Translations under genes and position numbers: made by a program
Source: Mobula hypostoma
Lineage: Eukaryota
NCBI RefSeq assembly: GCF_963921235.1
Contig: NC_086104.1
Location: forward strand, 4,464,001-4,528,000
Reading direction: 5' to 3'
DNA length: 64,000 nt
The notes under the pieces: generated by a model
Databases searched by the model: none
Told to the model about the DNA's origin: nothing
The model's input: the letters and a program-made list of their open reading frames with translations, nothing else
In this document: piece by piece, positions 16,821-29,313 of the stretch
How positions within the stretch are numbered: the stretch's first letter is position 1
Layout: every line of letters starts with the position of its first letter

Positions 16821-17564
16821 ATGGTGCCCAAATATATTAATATAGATAATATTATGTGGGGCACAGATAGATACCAGTGTCTTTTCCCCACCGGTGAAAT
16901 GTCTCGTCCCAGAGGACAGGCATTGGAAGTGAGAGAGGGTAATTTCAAAGGAGATACGAGGGGCAAGTTTCTGAAACAGAGAGGGGGAGAGTCTGGAATT
17001 CACTGCCGGGGTGGTGGTGCAGACAAATATGATAGAGACGTTCAAGTGGTCCTTGGATAGAGACATGAATTGGCAGGAAGTGGAGGGATATGGACATTGT
17101 GTGGGCAGAAATGATTAGTTTCACTGGACATTTGATAGTGAATTTTAATTATTTCGACACATCAAGTCCAAAGGGTCTGTTCCAGTGCAATATTGTTCTG
17201 TGTCCGATGTTTGAAATGACATTGAAGGGAACGGAGGGAAATGGATGATACACAGGAGGAGGACATTTAGTACACATTGTCACCAAGATCAGCACAGTAT
17301 TGTGGGCGGAATGGCCAGTCCAGTGCTGTACTGTTCTATGTTCCAACAACTGGGCTCTGATCACATTCACCCTCTCGATCTCAACCACCGACCAGGGTCA
17401 GAAACATCGCAAATGTTGTCTCTGGTGAAATTCTTGTCTCGCACGTCAAATGAGTAGAATGTCTGGCCTTTGAACTTTTCCATGTCTGATGAGCGTGTCT
17501 GTGCAGAAATCCATCCAGGGTTCCTCCCCCAGCCGAGGTCACACAGACCGATTCCCGCTGTGGT

Positions 17565-17593
17565 TCAGCTGCGAGACGGTGGTTTATTGTCGG
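17565..17593 (-). CDS. Candidate terminal coding exon of the VJ receptor
   Basis: cattgtttgtgtttcag|CC GAC AAT AAA CCA CCG TCT CGC AGC TGA; phase 1, gives ADNKPPSRS-stop. Chosen for its strong acceptor and compatible phase; other nearer acceptors or read-through of exon 3 are possible. Confidence 0.45.
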
Positions 17594-18379
17594 CTGAAAC
17601 ACAAACAATGAGTTGTGTGAGGTGAGCCGGTGAAGAATGGGAGAGTTAAACTATGTGGCAGGCACTGTCTGAGTGGTTTTCCCGAGTCTCTGACCTTCGG
17701 GGTTTTGGGACTCAGGAATAAGTCACCTCTGCTGGTCCTGAGAATGGACCTGTGGCCAGGGAAAAATGAACTGGACAACATGGATGTTTCTCACTACCAT
17801 GCCAGGTTACTGCTGGATGCAGGGTGCTGAGGGCAGAAGCACCCATGGGTGGGGGACTCTATCAGCAACACAATGCTGCTGTCCTGATGCTGGACTCATA
17901 TCAGGGGCCCTGAACAGACTATGCAAAATGAATGTGGAGAAAAGACAACTCAGTCCCTCCAATCCGTTCTGTCACTTGATCAGATAGTGGCCGATGTGTT
18001 TTAGCTCTGACCAACCTTCACGGTCCAAAACCAGCAAATTCCAGCCGGTTCCAACCGGGAATTCCCACCTGTGTTGGAGAGGCTTGTACATCTCCATGGC
18101 AACACCAGTGTTTCCAGAGCAGCTAGGCTACGGTGACGTTGTACAACTGCCCCACGTTCTGTATTCCCCACGAGAACAAATGGTTTCTCTACATCCATCA
18201 GAATGGACTACCTTAACATTGGCAGCTCCTCTCATATCATGTTCTGGTGTGGGATCTCCAGCACACAGGAACATAAGGGAATCAGTCAGATCACACCTAG
18301 TTGTACCATGTTCTGGTGTGGATCTTCAGTGTTCAGGAACACAAGAGGCTACAGAGAGTCCAGGACTGAACCAGTTCAT

Positions 18380-18600
18380 CATGAAATTCTCTTCCCACCA
18401 TTGAGAACATTTACAAGGGATGATGTCTCAGGAAGGTGCCATCCATCAGAGAACCCCACCAGCTGGGCCGTATCCGCTACTTAATGCCATCTTCAGGCAG
18501 CAGGTACAGGAGCCTGAAGTTACATACATCGAGGTGCAACAACAGCTTCTTCCCCATTGCCATCAAGGTCTTGAACACACCTGGTTGTGGTTCCTCTCCA
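18380..18600 (+). mobile_element. Rex1/Babar LINE 3' fragment
   Basis: PSSGSRYRSLKLHTSRCNNSFFPIAIKVLN, the typical Rex1 ORF end. Confidence 0.75.
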
Positions 18601-18986
18601 TGCCTTGTGGTGCATTGGGTGGCAATCTAGCCATTTTGTTAACATTTAACTGTTTTCATGAGGTTGAGTTGACAGCTCAATACTCCACTGATCACCGATG
18701 GGAAGTGTGCAAGGTACCGGACAGATTCAAACCTGGGACCAATTGTGCAAATGGCTGGGAACATTGAACCCTGCCTCATCTCGCCAGTAGATCTGGTTCA
18801 GATGACACAGTGAACTTGCTCAGGGATGGATGTCCTTTCCCTGAAGTCATCGTGAGGAGTTACTGATGGATCCAGAAGAGGACGGGGACTGTGAGTGGGA
18901 CTTCAAGGAAAGGACTTCTCCAGTCTCACCACTTCCACAGCAGTTGATATGGTTTAGCGGGCCTGTCCAAAGATGTTGCAACGTAC

Positions 18987-19029
18987 CTTGGAGATGACCG
19001 TAGATGGACTGAGTGGGACGTTGCAGAGC
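18987..19029 (-). CDS. Cytoplasmic exon 3 (completes the ITAM)
   Basis: catttctgtgttctctactag|GCT ... CAA G|GTACGT; 43 nt, phase 0-1. Reads ALQRPTQSIYGHLQ and, joined to exon 2, gives YMAL-QRPTQSI-YGHL. Confidence 0.82.
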
Positions 19030-19116
19030 CTAGTAGAGAACACAGAAATGGTGTGAACAGCTTGACAGCTCATGCTGTGGGAAAAGCTTCAATGTTCCAG
19101 AGGTGACCTTCCTTAC

Positions 19117-19158
19117 CATGTAGGTGTTGTTTGAATCGACCTGGTGACCTCCTGAACC
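19117..19158 (-). CDS. Cytoplasmic exon 2 (first ITAM tyrosine)
   Basis: gttgtgttctcttgtag|GGT ... TAC ATG|GTAAGG; 42 nt, phase 0-0. Reads GSGGHQVDSNNTYM. Confidence 0.82.
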
Positions 19159-19189
19159 CTACAAGAGAACACAACTGCATCATTACAAA

Positions 19190-20060
19190 CAAGAGAAAAA
19201 TCTGCAAATGCTGGAAATCCAAGTAACAGACACAAAATGCTGGAGGAATTCAACAGGCCAGGCAGCATCTATAGAAAAAAAGTACAGTTGACATTTTGAG
19301 CTGAGACCCTTCATCAGGCCTGAGGAAAAAAAGATGAGGAATAGTGGAGGGGAGAGGATAAAGACACACACTGGGTGATAGAAGAAACCAGGAGGAGTGG
19401 TGGGGTGAAAGAGCTACAGGTCTGGAGAAGGGGGAATCTGTGGAAAAGACATTCCCATTCCGACATGTTAGTCCGAAGTCTCCTCTACTGTCAAGATGAG
19501 ACCACACTCAGGTTGGAGGATCAACACCTTATATTCCATTTGGGTAGCCTCCAACCTGGTGGCATGAAAATTGATTTCTTGAAGTTACTGTAAGGACCCA
19601 CTCATTCTCCATTCCCCATTCCTATTTCCCATCTTACCTCCTTACCTGCCCATCACCTCCCTCTGGTGCTTCCTTCCTTCCATGGCCTTCTGTCCTCTCG
19701 TCTTTGATTCCAATCCCCATTCCAATTCCAACATGTTGATCCATGGCCGTCTTTACTAAAATGATGAGGCTACTCTCAGGTTGAAGGAGAAACACCTCAT
19801 ATTCCATCTGGGCAGACTCCGAACTGATAGCTAGAACAGTGATTTCTCTATATTCCAGTAAATTCTCACATCCCCCTTTCCTTTTCTTCCATTCCCCACG
19901 CTGGCTCTCTTCTTACCTCCTTATTTGACTATCACCTTTTCCTGTGTGTCTTCAGTCTTTTAGCTTTTCCACTGACACCACTCAGCTACTCACTGCATCC
20001 TCCTCCCCCACTCACTTGTCTTCACCTATCATCTTCTAGCTTATGCCTCATCCCCTCCTG
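19190..20060 (+). mobile_element. Penelope-like element remnants (two GIY-YIG C-terminal fragments, degenerate hammerhead end) in a receptor intron
   Basis: HSHSDMLVRSLLYCQDETTLRLEDQHLIFHLGSLQPGGMKIDF at 19450-19590 and a second copy at 19730-19860; hammerhead-like core at 19285-19320. Confidence 0.75.
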
Positions 20061-20084
20061 CCATGATGGGCAGAAGGGCCTGTT

Positions 20085-20398
20085 CATAGAAACATTGAAA
20101 CATAGAAAATAGGTGCAGGAGTAGGCCATTCTGCCCTTCCAGCCTGCACCGCCATTCAGTACGATCATGGCTGATCATCCAACTCAGAACCCTGTACCAG
20201 TCTTCCCTCCATACCCGCTGATCCCTTTAGCCACAAGGGCCATATGTAACTCCCTCTCAAATATAGCCAATGAACTGGCCTCAACTGTTTCCTGTGGCAG
20301 AGAATTCCACAGATTCACCACTCTCTGCGTGAAGAAGTTTTTCCTAATCTCGGTCCTAAAAGGCTTCCCCTTTATCCTCAAACTGTGACCCCTTGTTC
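20085..20398 (-). mobile_element. CR1 3' end (subfamily with (tttctatg)n tail)
   Basis: RIKGKPFRTEIRKNFFTQRVVNLWNSLP; tail atagaaac repeats at about 20085-20110. Confidence 0.9.
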
Positions 20399-20597
20399 CT
20401 GTGCTGTACAGCTGTACGGTCTGTGGTCAATATCCAGGAACAGTTACACCACATACATTTGCAAATCATTCAGACATTGCAGAAATATTCAATGAACCAC
20501 AATGTCACTGGGGAATATCCCTGATGTAAGAAGCCAAGAACATACCAGAACGATCCCCACACAATTCTACTTATCTGAGAAAAGCATCAGAACTCAC

Positions 20598-20671
20598 CGG
20601 GACATCCCTGGCCAAGGAAACATTTTCATAATCTGCCCCTGAGCTCCGGTGATCAGTTTCTGTGGGTGGGT
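20598..20671 (-). CDS. Cytoplasmic exon 1 (YENV motif)
   Basis: tttatactctatttcacag|AC ... CCG|GTGAGT; 74 nt, phase 1-0, in frame with the TM exon. Reads HPPTETDHRSSGADYENVSLARDVP. Confidence 0.85.
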
Positions 20672-20837
20672 CTGTGAAATAGAGTATAAATTATCAGTAA
20701 CAGCCGTCTCCAAGCTGTGAGTCCCACATTGCTGTCACAACACAACGACGGGCTCTTTCACAATCAGTCCCCGACCTTCACATTTTAATAACCCCACACA
20801 ACAATCGGATCAGAATGAACCATTTAGTCACACGTAC

Positions 20838-20957
20838 GGGACGGGTGGTTTCTAAACGCTCTGCGTCTGATGAGGAAAATGCCTCCAGTGACAGCGAGAA
20901 CCCCCAGCACGACAGCCAGAATGAGCCAGGCCAGGTACGATGGGGCTCGGGACATCT
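20838..20957 (-). CDS. Transmembrane exon of the VJ receptor
   Basis: tttcctttccattcctcaaacag|AG ... TCC C|GTACGT; 120 nt, phase 1-1. Reads MSRAPSYLAWLILAVVLGVLAVTGGIFLIRRRAFRNHPS: 23-aa uncharged hydrophobic span followed by an RRR stop-transfer. Lies 178 nt downstream of the psi-VJ-C donor. Confidence 0.88.
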
Positions 20958-21135
20958 CTGTTTGAGGAATGGAAAGGAAATCACATCAGTGGGTAAACAT
21001 CTGGGAAGCTCACTGTCAGTGTAGAAAGAATCCATTCAGCCCATCCTCCTGTGCCAGCTCTTTGAAAAAGGTGTTTACTATATCTAATAAATCCATTCAG
21101 GGACACACTGCTGAATAAATAGAACTTGTACTCAC

Positions 21136-22304
21136 TGGTTACGATGAGCTGGGTGCCGTTCCCGTCGATGTCTCCCCACACTCTGCAGTAATAGACAGCA
21201 GAATCACTGTGCACCACGTCTGTGACTGTCAGGGTGAAGCTGCTGTTGGACGTGTCTCTGTAGGACTGGAACCTCTCAGTGAAACCCCGTCCCCACTCTG
21301 GGCTGCCTCCTGCCCTGTGTGTTAAAACCCACTGCATGTCCTGCCCAGCAACACATAAAAGTTGCTGGTGAACGCAGCAGGCCAGGCAGCATCTCTAGGA
21401 AGAGGTACAGTCGACGTTTCAGGCCGAGACCCTTTGTCAGGACTAACTGAAAGAAGAGATAGTAAGAGATTTGAAAGTGGGAGGGGGAGGGAGAGACCCG
21501 AAATAATAGGAGAAGACAGGAGGGGGAGCGATGGAGCCAAGAGCTGGACAGGTGATTGGCAAAAGGGATATGAGAGGATCATGGGACAGGAGGCCCAGGG
21601 AGAAGGAAAAAGGGGGAGGGGGGTAAAAGCCCAGAGGATGGGCAAGGGGTATAGTGAGAGTGACAGAGGGAGAAAAAGGAGAGAGAGATAAAGAATGTAT
21701 GTATATAAATAAATAACAGATGGGGTACGAGGGGAAGGTGGGGCATTAGCAGAAGTTTGAGAAGTCAATGTTCATGCCATCAGGTTGGAGGCTACCCAGA
21801 CGGAATATAATGTGTTGTTCCTCCAACCTGAGTGTGGCTTCATCTTTACAGTAGAGGAGGCCGTGGATAGACATATCAGAATAGGAGTGAGATCCTCTCA
21901 TAGCCCTTTTGCCAAACAACTGTCCAGCTCCTGGCTCCATCCCTCCCCCTCCTGTCTTCTCCTATCATTTTGGGTCTCCCCCTCCCCCTCCCACTTTCAA
22001 ATCTCTTACTAGCTCTTCTTTCAGTTAGTCCTGACGAAGGGTCTCAGCCCAAACCGTCGACTGTACCTCTTCCTAGGGATGCTGCCTGGCCTGCTACGTT
22101 CACCAGCAAATTTCATGTGTTGCTTGAAATTCCAGCATCTGCAGATTTCCTCGTGTTTGCATGTCTTGCCCAGGTAGCTTCCGTACCAGCGGACGTCATT
22201 GTCTTCCAGTCTGTCTTTGCTCATGGTACACCATAACCATACTGTGTGACCTTCAGAGACACACTGTATGCTCGGGAATTGGATAAGTACAGGAACATCT
22301 GCAC
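21136..22304 (-). pseudogene. Disrupted VJ exon (psi-VJ-C), paralogue of VJ-A
   Basis: 5' half at 22174-22304 (ADVPVLIQFP..WLWC..VRWY) and 3' half at 21136-21348 (MQWVLTH..YYCRVWGDIDGNGTQLIVT, donor A|GTGAGT) are separated by an 809-bp insertion with a 16-bp TSD. Also a 1-nt deletion after the WY codons and a 17-nt deletion of the acceptor polypyrimidine tract relative to VJ-A. Confidence 0.9.
21349..22157. mobile_element. Penelope-like insertion with inverted terminal arms inside psi-VJ-C
   Basis: 16-bp TSD tgcatgtc[c/t]tgcccag at 21333-21348 and 22158-22173; inverted arms at about 21349-21500 and 21970-22125, each with a hammerhead-like core; GIY-YIG C-terminus HSYSDMSIHGLLYCKDEATLRLEEQHIIFRLGSLQPDGMNIDF on the minus strand at 21746-21890. 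Confidence 0.85.
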
Positions 22305-22574
22305 CTCACTTCAACTCCAGCTTGAGGGGTGGCTGGGACAGAGTTGCTGAGTGGGGAACGTGGTTTTGAAAAGTGTTCCTGAGACACAGAGGTGCAGAGA
22401 ACAAGCTCTGTCTACAGAATTCCACTGAAAGCCGAGGGTAGGAGACAAATCTCCACAGTGTGTAATATATGTTTTGAAGGTGCACTGTGGTCTGGAGGAA
22501 CATTGTGTCATGTGGTTGTATACAGAATATGTTTACAGTCAAATCACAATAAACTTGAACGATTACGAAGGCAA

Positions 22575-23155
22575 AGGTGCTTGCGACACTGAAAGGTATG
22601 AAAGTAGGTAAGTCACCTGGGCCACACGGTCAACACCCGAGGGTTCTGAACATTGTGGCTGAAGAGATTGCAGAGCCATTAGTAATGATCTTTCAAGAAT
22701 CTCTAGATTCTGAAATGGTTCTGGAAGACTGTAAAATTGTAAATGTCACTCCATTTATTCCCACTCTTTGCCTCGTGCCAATCAGTCAATTCTCACTCTA
22801 TGCTAGTATCTTTCCTGTAATACCATGGACTCTTATCTTGTTAAGCAGCCTCACGTGGACCTTGTCAAAGGTCTTCTGAAAATCTGAGGGCTCGATATAG
22901 ACCGATTCTCCTTTCTCTACCCTGCCTGTTATTTCCTTAAATAATTCCTCAGATCTGTCAAGCAGGACATCCCCTCAAGGAAACCGTGCACACTTTGGCC
23001 TATTTTATCATGTGTCTCCAAGTACCCTGAAACCTCGTCCTTAATAATGGACTCCAACATCTTCCCAACCACTGAAGTCAGGCTCACTGGCCTATAATTT
23101 CCTTTCTTTTGCTTCCCTCCCTTCTTAAATAGTGGAGTGACATTGGAGAGGGTCG
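22575..23155. mobile_element. Rearranged CR1 fragments in both orientations
   Basis: Plus KSPGPHGQHPRVL at 22577-22760; minus NYRPVSLTSVVGK..HGF at 22930-23150. Confidence 0.75.
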
Positions 23156-23401
23156 AGAGGAGATTCCTATGATGAGTCGCACACAGATCATTAAATAAAC
23201 TACAGTGCACAGTATGAGAGGTAATATACTAATGTGGACTGTGGATTGGTTATGAACAGAAAACAGTCTGTTCACAACCAGTTTCTGAAACGGAAATGGC
23301 CACTTTAGGATTGTGTGACTGTGAGTGTTGGGGTATCACTGTGAATTGATCGGTGATATCAGTGAGGGGAATGTGTGACGGTTAATGTTACTGATTGGCA
23401 G

Positions 23402-23899: not shown

Positions 23900-24355
23900 C
23901 TATTTTATAAGAATTACTATGGTTATAATTAAAACTTTTATCAGAGCTACATGCAGAAGCATTCCCCAGAAGTCTCCAAAAATGTTAAAAGGCCATGGCC
24001 AGGTTTCCTTACCATCGGTAAACACATGCATCTTTTCTCCAATTCCCTTAATTTTCTAGATTTCCTGAGTGATATGCTGAGATAGATCTGTAATATTAGA
24101 GGCTTCATCTGGAATATAAATACAGTATTCCTTTCCTATGACAGCACATGTCCCTCCTTTCTCTGCTAGCAATAAATCTAATGCCATCCTATTCTGTAAA
24201 ACTACCATCCTCAGAGCTACTATTTCAGTAGTTAAATCCGTAATCTGGGTCTGGACATCAGTTAAAACCTTAGCAGTACTATTCGCCAACTCTAGTGCAG
24301 CTGTCAACTTGATTACTTCTCATGAATTTCGGGCTGTCCCATAGAAAGCAGATCC
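23900..24355 (-). pseudogene. env: Retroviral env TM-subunit remnant (gamma-type immunosuppressive domain)
   Basis: FYGTARNS*EVIKLTAALE..LQNRMALDLLLAEKGGTCAVIGKEYC..ITQEI*..WGMLLHVALIKVLIITIVILIK; ISD present, CX6CC decayed to CX6YC, in-frame stops. Confidence 0.9.
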
Positions 24356-26364: not shown

Positions 26365-26712
26365 CAGTTACATTGAGCTGTGTTCCTCCTCCGTAGATGT
26401 AACTCCACACACTGCAGTTGTACACTGCAGTGTCACTAATAGATGTGTTACTGATGGTCAGAATGTAACTGTTACTCACGACATTCCTGTAAGACTGAAA
26501 ACGGTCAGAGATACACCCAGACCTGCTCACAGAGTCATTCACAAAGTGACTCAACGCCCACTCGCTCTTGTTCCCCGGCCGCTGGTGGTACCACTGGACA
26601 TCGGTGACAGTCACACTGGCATTATACAAGGCACAGTGGAGCTGGACAGTTACACCCTCCGGCACCTTGCTGATTGGTGGATCCTGCACAAGGACGGGAT
26701 CATCCGCGGGAT
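26365..26712 (-). CDS. Germline-joined VJ-type Ig V-domain exon (VJ-B)
   Basis: Acceptor ccaacacacag|AT at 26712 and donor G|GTAAGT at 26365; 348 nt, phase 1-1, open frame. Reads PADDPVLVQDPP..VQLHC..VQWYHQRPG..RFQSYRN..DTAVYNCSVWSYIYGGGTQLNVT. Confidence 0.9.
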
Positions 26713-28959: not shown

Positions 28960-29313
28960 TGGTTACGATGAGTTGGGCGCCGTTCCCGTTGATGTCTCCC
29001 CACACTCTGCAGTAATAGACGGCAGAATCATTGTGCACCACGTCTGTGACTGTCAGGGTGAAGCTGCTGTTGGACGTGTCTCTGTAGGACTGGAACCTCT
29101 CACTCAAACGGTATTCCTTCTCTGTGCTGCTTCTTGCCCTGAGCATAGAAACCAACTCCATGGTCTTCATGTTCTGCCCAGGTAGTTTCCGATACCAGTG
29201 GAGGTCAGTGTCTTCTGGTCTGATATTGCTGATGGTACAGCAAAACCACGCCTTGTGACCCTCAGTGACACGCTGTATGCTCGGGGACTGGATAAGGACA
29301 GGTTTGTCTGCAC
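28960..29313 (-). CDS. Germline-joined VJ-type Ig V-domain exon (VJ-A) of a non-rearranging antigen-receptor-like membrane protein
   Basis: Acceptor tattctcccttacag|GT at 29313 and donor A|GTGAGT at 28960; 354 nt, phase 1-1, open frame. Reads ADKPVLIQSP..WFCC..LHWYRKLPG..RFQSYRDTSNSSFTLTV..DSAVYYCRVWGDINGNGAQLIVT, with B-strand Cys, C-strand Trp, D-x-A-x-YYC and a J-like G-x-G-x-x-L-x-V in one exon. Confidence 0.9.

Follow-up and report, generated by a model that had tools for sequence, protein, structure and literature searches.

The window, a stretch of 64,000 nucleotides from Mobula hypostoma, carries on its minus strand two very short exons that could be joined to give a tyrosine motif of the ITAM type. 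The preliminary description of this DNA proposed that the motif is split by a phase-0 intron at the position known from classical ITAM genes, and that it is a real ITAM from the common ITAM exon module. We asked whether the two mini-exons encode a real ITAM or a chance reading, to which gene they belong, and how the motif compares with those of known ITAM-bearing receptors. All positions given below are those of the window.

The split motif and its chance expectation

The exon coordinates, the 87-nt phase-0 intron, the peptide and the upstream Asp named in the preliminary description were re-read from the sequence and found exactly as claimed:

19117-19158, minus strand: ITAM-A mini-exon, 42 nt, phase 0 to 0, ag|GGT TCA...TAC ATG|gtaagg
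19030-19116, minus strand: ITAM-splitting intron, 87 nt, phase 0, between Y-M and A-L
18987-19029, minus strand: ITAM-B mini-exon, 43 nt, phase 0 to 1, GCT CTG...CTC CAA G|gtacgt

The ITAM-A exon translates to GSGGHQVDSNNTYM and carries the first Tyr and the residue after it, while the ITAM-B exon translates to ALQRPTQSIYGHLQ plus one base (G) and supplies the rest of the first YxxL, a 7-residue spacer and the second YxxL. Joined, the two read DSNNT-YMAL-QRPTQSI-YGHL-Q, that is YxxL-x7-YxxL, and the junction TAC ATG|gt...ag|GCT CTG is a phase-0 cut between residues 2 and 3 of the first YxxL. The intron has a pyrimidine-rich 3' end (ttctgtgttctctactag, then ag) and, if retained, reads VRKVTSGTLKLFPQHELSSCSHHFCVLY followed by a stop. 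Upstream of the first ITAM Tyr, Asp is found at -5 and Asn at -3; the Asn fits the D/E/N-x-x-Y form of the ITAM given in PMC4536121 but does not fit the strict D/E-x-x-Y form used in PMC2832619.

Motifs of this kind were also counted over the whole window. The unsplit form YxxL/I-x6-8-YxxL/I occurred approximately 10 times in the six frames, with one simple repeat excluded. The split form was counted as Y-x|GT followed by AG|x-L/I-x6-8-YxxL/I, with eight open codons upstream and no stop, and gave 59 chance pairs with introns of up to 3 kb and 3 with introns of up to 200 nt. Because of these 59 pairs, the motif together with GT/AG is by itself no evidence, and the reality of the ITAM rests on its gene context. 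The reading frame of the mini-exons is unbroken from the transmembrane (TM) exon across four canonical splice junctions, and the ITAM lies on the cytoplasmic side, in frame and downstream of a hydrophobic span of 23 residues with its RRR stop-transfer sequence.

Gene model and RNA-like contigs

Seven exons on the minus strand (29313-28960, 26712-26365, 20957-20838, 20671-20598, 19158-19117, 19029-18987 and 17593-17565), all joined by canonical GT-AG junctions, translate to residues 18-352 of XP_062911019.1 (P0018) with zero differences, stop included. This M. hypostoma protein, annotated as "uncharacterized protein LOC134350038 isoform X2", was reached by a tail-restricted protein search; a search with the V-A exon had first given uncharacterised ray and skate proteins, and two of these already showed the tail ...DSNNTYMALQ[RH]PTQSIYGHLQADNKPPS[TR]S. 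The gene is not hidden: a RefSeq prediction exists for it, under the name of an uncharacterised protein. The residue-for-residue agreement of the exon chain with this protein bears out the earlier claim that the motif is a real ITAM and not a chance reading. Besides the two mini-exons, the locus contains the following exons:

28960-29313, minus strand: V-A exon, encoding a V-set Ig domain whose J-like motif is GNGAQLIVT and whose best solved-structure matches are antibody variable domains
26365-26712, minus strand: V-B exon, encoding a V-set Ig domain whose J-like motif is GGGTQLNVT, with Pfam V-set matches on relatives
21137-22305, minus strand: V-C, a third V-J exon, broken by a repeat insertion of approximately 830 nt (22182-21350)
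20838-20957, minus strand: TM exon, 120 nt, phase 1 to 1, encoding (E/K)MSRAPSYLAWLILAVVLGVLAVTGGIFLIRRRAFRNHPS
20598-20671, minus strand: first exon of the cytoplasmic tail, 74 nt, phase 1 to 0, encoding HPPTETDHRSSGADYENVSLARDVP and holding YENV
17565-17593, minus strand: coding part of the last exon, ADNKPPSRS then stop, with the 3' UTR continuing below 17565

Both V domains have a Cys...YYC/YNC pair and a J-like strand, and the membrane span YLAWLILAVVLGVLAVTGGIFLI contains zero charged residues. The YENV motif is of the YxN, Grb2-SH2 type, and its Y-E-N is invariant in 9 aligned tails. The phases of the small exons follow on from one another, with the YENV exon handing phase 0 to ITAM-A and ITAM-B leaving phase 1 for the last exon.

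The third V-J exon is skipped by the chain that equals XP_062911019.1. It is split between ...VRWY and AGQDMQWV..., and the inserted repeat is very high-copy, with extreme depth in all sequencing runs. One contig (X2 record 21) joins the two halves of V-C with 11 letters between them and has 17 differences in 121 nt; it is probably the intact exon of a paralogue. The leader (residues 1-17, MFAAIITTLTLSVCAVG) was not encoded in the 64-kb window, even at E 1000. Its absence across 29314-64000 means either that the first intron is longer than 34 kb or that the model borrows the leader of a neighbouring family member. Since the leader lies outside the window and one V exon is broken, this copy could be less than fully functional.

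In the intron between V-B and V-C, an open stretch at 24059-24319 (minus strand) matches Pfam TLV_coat (E 1.5e-10), the TM subunit of retroviral envelopes, and represents an endogenous-retrovirus fragment; the same intron holds a reverse-transcriptase fragment at 22932-23228 (minus strand; Pfam RVT_1, E 1.3e-4, below the curated cut-off). The small exons are flanked by two repeat copies, at 19190-19400 and 20070-20400, whose depth is in the tens of thousands in every run, and one flanking copy ends only approximately 30 nt before the ITAM-A acceptor.

Sequencing contigs were mapped to 17400-22400, and the RNA nature of runs X1, X2 and X5 was guessed from their behaviour. These three runs had zero depth in the long-intron bins 17901-18234, while the large DNA-like run X17 covered every bin. 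A 253-nt contig (X2 record 17) occupies 17464-17593, where its 130 nt show 0 differences, and breaks off precisely at the predicted acceptor of the last exon; the 123 letters that it leaves upstream equal 43 + 42 + 38. A contig from another organism with approximately 8% differences (X5 record 24) also stops at 17593, with 124 letters left. In the bin 18903-19069, the depth of X2 equals the contig depth times approximately 42 bases, i.e. the ITAM-B exon alone. Further upstream, the aligned part of X5 record 27 coincides with the TM exon (20838-20957), leaving 29 letters upstream, and 20957 is also the end of X2 record 20. The intron from the TM exon to the YENV exon is read through unspliced in other contigs, and some contigs are approximately 2% different from the window and may stem from a paralogue or a sister species. 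The joint from 19117 to 19029 was absent from the listed joints, a listing swamped by repeat-derived joints, and splicing of the mini-exons was deduced indirectly, from contig ends, left-over lengths and bin depths. Overall, the RefSeq exon chain, the occurrence of the same junction in ten other predicted proteins and the RNA-like contig ends at acceptors agree with the proposal that the mini-exons are spliced to each other.

For two RNA-like contigs (X1 record 1, X5 record 25) the end point is 18900, where the minus strand reads ag|TCCCACTC, which suggests an alternative 3' exon. Used after ITAM-B, such an alternative last exon (18750-18900, minus strand) would read VPLTVPVLFWIHQ and then stop, keeping the ITAM and changing the C-terminus.

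Relatives, isoforms and conservation

The TM segment and tail are common to 11 predicted proteins (10 distinct tails), that of the present gene included, from four species: M. hypostoma, M. birostris, Hypanus sabinus and Hemitrygon akajei. The preliminary description had named conservation in orthologues as a check, and in the alignment of these ray proteins both Tyr, both Leu and the x7 spacing were unchanged in 11/11. The variable ITAM positions (M/T, R/H, T/A, S/P and H/N) are all x positions, for which the chance probability is approximately 0.15. Tail identity to that of the window was 85-96%, whereas the V-A domain of the window reached only 55-74% with its best counterpart. Conservation was nevertheless rejected as proof of selection, because the intron is conserved as much as the exons: the retained-intron translation is approximately 93% conserved between Mobula and Hemitrygon, on par with the tail. 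Private variants of the present copy include HRSSGADYENVSL.

An exhaustive HMMER search with the TM segment and tail against 1.84 billion representatives returned three clusters, all from Mobula or Hemitrygon, and one weak match to a protein of 1582 aa (E 4e-4). In the databases searched, only stingrays and mantas were thus seen to have the ITAM tail. The V-domain homologues P0001 and P0008 of skates had no TM segment or tail in their gene models.

The intron position in relatives was deduced from pairs of protein isoforms. P0020 and P0024 are isoforms of a paralogue in the same genome (LOC134350340) and are identical up to ...NNTYT, after which P0020 continues with ALQRPTQSIYGHLQ... and P0024 with VRKVTSGTLKLFPQHELSSCCSHHFCVLY and then a stop; the P0024 extension is an in-frame reading of the intron of the window (VRKVTSGTLKLFPQHELSSCSHHFCVLY). 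A pair from Hemitrygon (P0013 and P0016) shows the same divergence after T-Y-x, with P0016 retaining the intron. At least one paralogue and one other genus thus share the position of the Yx-splitting intron. Other isoforms differ further downstream. In M. birostris, comparison of P0014 with P0017 revealed skipping of the 43-nt exon, which leads to a frameshift, and P0025 differs from P0021 by a donor 57 nt further on, which matches gt at 18929-18928 in the window and adds 19 residues (GTLQHLWTGRLNHINCCGN) between the ITAM and the C-terminus. The window itself has this second donor, G|gtgaga, 57 nt past the ITAM-B donor (18930-18986, minus strand). A DNA-like contig from another organism (X17 record 13) runs unbroken over 18921-19187, with 8 differences and a 3-nt insertion at 19055 within the intron.

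The family also has inhibitory-type members. While the ITAM tail occurs in P0006, P0007, P0012, P0018 and others, the relatives P0005, P0010, P0011 and P0003 join these V types to a different TM segment and to tails with TVYANV, MFYADI and TEYAII (ITSM/ITIM-like). Similar ectodomains are therefore combined with differing TM/tail modules in activating and inhibitory members, which is the mark of a paired family. Within the 64-kb window, no inhibitory-type TM segment or tail was found.

Comparison with known ITAM receptors and proposed signalling

In CD3, CD79, FcR-gamma and DAP12 the first YxxL is cut in the register Yx|xL, and the preliminary description had placed the intron of the window at this same position. 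A phase-0 intron splitting the first YxxL has been called "typical" or "characteristic" of ITAMs (PMC2110893, PMC2832619, PMC5112662; see also PMC4536121), and in shark CD79a the last two introns are in phase 0 (PMC4034164). Profile searches did not link the ray tail to these chains: the Pfam ITAM profile, a very short model for which HMMER filters drop weak matches, gave no family for the tail at E up to 10, and phmmer with one tail as well as a 9-sequence tail profile searched against all PDB chains returned no ITAM-bearing chain at E up to 10. The PDB searches yielded at most chance matches to an antibody light chain and an epimerase. A subunit of the CD3, CD79, FcR-gamma, DAP12 or zeta type was ruled out, given a TM segment that lacks the acidic residue by which such subunits pair with a ligand-binding chain, and an ectodomain of two large V domains. 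The ray receptor shares the classical consensus with x7 spacing with the ITAM subunits (CD3 gamma/delta/epsilon, CD3 zeta, CD79a/b, FcR gamma and DAP12). However, these are adaptors with none or one small Ig domain, whereas the ray receptor has two large antibody-like V-J domains and is a predicted ligand-binding chain with its own ITAM. CD3 gamma/delta was considered as a source of the cassette: the ray YGHLQ would resemble YSHLQ in CD3 gamma/delta, and the 43-nt ray exon compares with an exon that is presumably 44 nt long.

The activating CEACAM1-related receptors (human CEACAM3, dog CEACAM28 and the ITAM-CEACAMs of marsupials and Xenopus) are likewise receptors that bear the motif themselves. 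Their CEACAM-type N-terminal IgV-like domain is not known to have the canonical disulfide. Membership of the ray protein in the CEACAM family was rejected, as both of its V domains have the Cys...YYC/YNC pair and the J-like strand; in contrast to CEACAMs, they combine the canonical Cys pair with a J-like GxGTxLxV strand and have antibody variable domains as best matches, and the layout is likened by description. What is alike is the receptor-borne ITAM or ITAM-like motif with its first YxxL split by a phase-0 intron, and the pairing of activating members with ITIM/ITSM relatives of similar ligand-binding domains, as in rays (PMC2110893, PMC2832619, PMC5112662). In marsupial and Xenopus CEACAMs the ITAM is, in addition, preceded by a Grb2-type YxN motif, and the cytoplasmic domain comes from four small exons (PMC2110893, PMC2832619, PMC5112662); the ray tail is laid out alike.

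Teleost NILT and NITR form multigene clusters of V-type Ig receptors with an ITIM or, in few members, an ITAM in their own tail, and in this they are like the ray family. They are confined to bony fish, whereas the ray family is cartilaginous, and the likeness is one of description. NITR V domains also carry J-like motifs, and most activating NITRs have a charged TM segment and an adaptor. Among the NILT there are members with their own ITAM, and the gene structure shows phase-1 Ig exons with a phase-0 last cytoplasmic intron (PMC3022915).

We consider it highly probable that the mini-exons are the ITAM-coding exons of an expressed gene, LOC134350038, which encodes a type-I V-J receptor with its own split ITAM. 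The predicted receptor would consist of two antibody-like V-J domains, an uncharged TM helix and a tail of approximately 70 residues, the latter made from four small exons (YENV, ITAM-A, ITAM-B and C-terminal). Splicing over the 87-nt phase-0 intron would create NNTYMAL-QRPTQSI-YGHL. Upon ligand-driven clustering, as the motif would predict, Src-family kinases may phosphorylate the Tyr of YMAL and YGHL, and the doubly phosphorylated motif may then dock the tandem SH2 domains of Syk/ZAP-70, while phospho-YENV could provide an additional Grb2 site. The receptor thus probably signals through its own ITAM and the Grb2-type YENV, and because its membrane span is uncharged, it would do so alone, without a partner of the CD3-zeta, FcR-gamma or DAP12 type. 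LOC134350038 would represent the activating arm of the paired family, which the ITSM/ITIM-like relatives with similar V domains would oppose. Non-signalling forms would be expected from intron retention or from skipping of the 43-nt exon, both of which destroy the motif's second half. The intron position would mark the motif as built like all classical ITAMs, and it fits a two-exon ITAM cassette that already existed when the tail acquired it. From the intron position only, we infer a descent from one shared exon module, as put forward in the preliminary description.

An alternative explanation for the intron position is that it is coincidental and that the ITAM arose de novo in the tail rather than from a common two-exon cassette. 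The sequence of the tail indeed shows no detectable resemblance to CD3, CD79 or other solved ITAM chains, convergent evolution does occur in short tyrosine motifs, and chance split motifs are frequent in raw DNA. However, with four introns over approximately 210 possible tail positions, we estimate a chance of approximately 2% for the exact site and phase, and the same layout of YxN exon, split ITAM and four cytoplasmic exons recurs in the activating CEACAMs of marsupials and Xenopus (PMC2832619, PMC5112662), and we regard a coincidence as unlikely. The function of the spliced motif could also be a different one: its main role may be in sorting or endocytosis, through two YxxPhi signals, or it may be an inhibitory "ITAMi", rather than an activation motif that recruits Syk/ZAP-70. 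YMAL and YGHL both fit YxxPhi, similar split motifs have been classed as "endocytic or ITAM-like" in work on CEACAMs (PMC2832619, PMC5112662), and the -3 position is occupied by Asn instead of an acidic residue, the Asp being at -5. This explanation appears improbable given the exact x7 spacing and the Leu at the end of each module, which make up the full classical consensus with the N-x-x-Y variant included (PMC4536121), and given the existence of separate inhibitory family members, which fits an activating role here.

It could further be argued that this copy is a decaying member of the cluster, with the ITAM exons as intact relics and the matching transcripts coming from paralogues. The insertion of approximately 830 nt in V-C, a leader exon that is not in the window and several RNA-like contigs approximately 2% off the window would agree with such a decay, and since the intron is as conserved as the exons, an open frame could persist for a time without selection. 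Yet the seven exons of the RefSeq model are open, have canonical splice sites and make up a complete TM receptor, X2 record 17 is identical to the last exon and UTR over 130 nt, and the broken V-C is not part of the matched RefSeq product. A decaying copy is, in our view, very improbable. The preferred reading therefore remains that of an expressed V-J receptor with a split ITAM of its own.

The established view is unchanged by these results, as the intron position is a textbook hallmark and the gene was already predicted in RefSeq. They do demonstrate that reading of the raw sequence recovered 14-codon exons correctly, and they document a canonical ITAM, split by an intron, in an uncharacterised family of paired V-J receptors from stingrays and mantas; a small literature search found no paper describing such a ray family. 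This cartilaginous-fish case joins the short list of receptors with their own classical ITAM (activating CEACAMs and some NILT/NITR) and supports the idea of the ITAM travelling as a two-exon cassette. That the ray tail is the very same mobile "activating tail cassette" as in marsupial and Xenopus CEACAMs, grafted onto non-rearranging antibody-like V-J domains, is a speculative and on balance unlikely extension of this idea. If true, receptor families would have exchanged a ready-made ITAM cassette of two exons by shuffling for as long as jawed vertebrates have existed, and the ray protein would be a living antigen-receptor-like chain that signals without CD3/CD79 partners.
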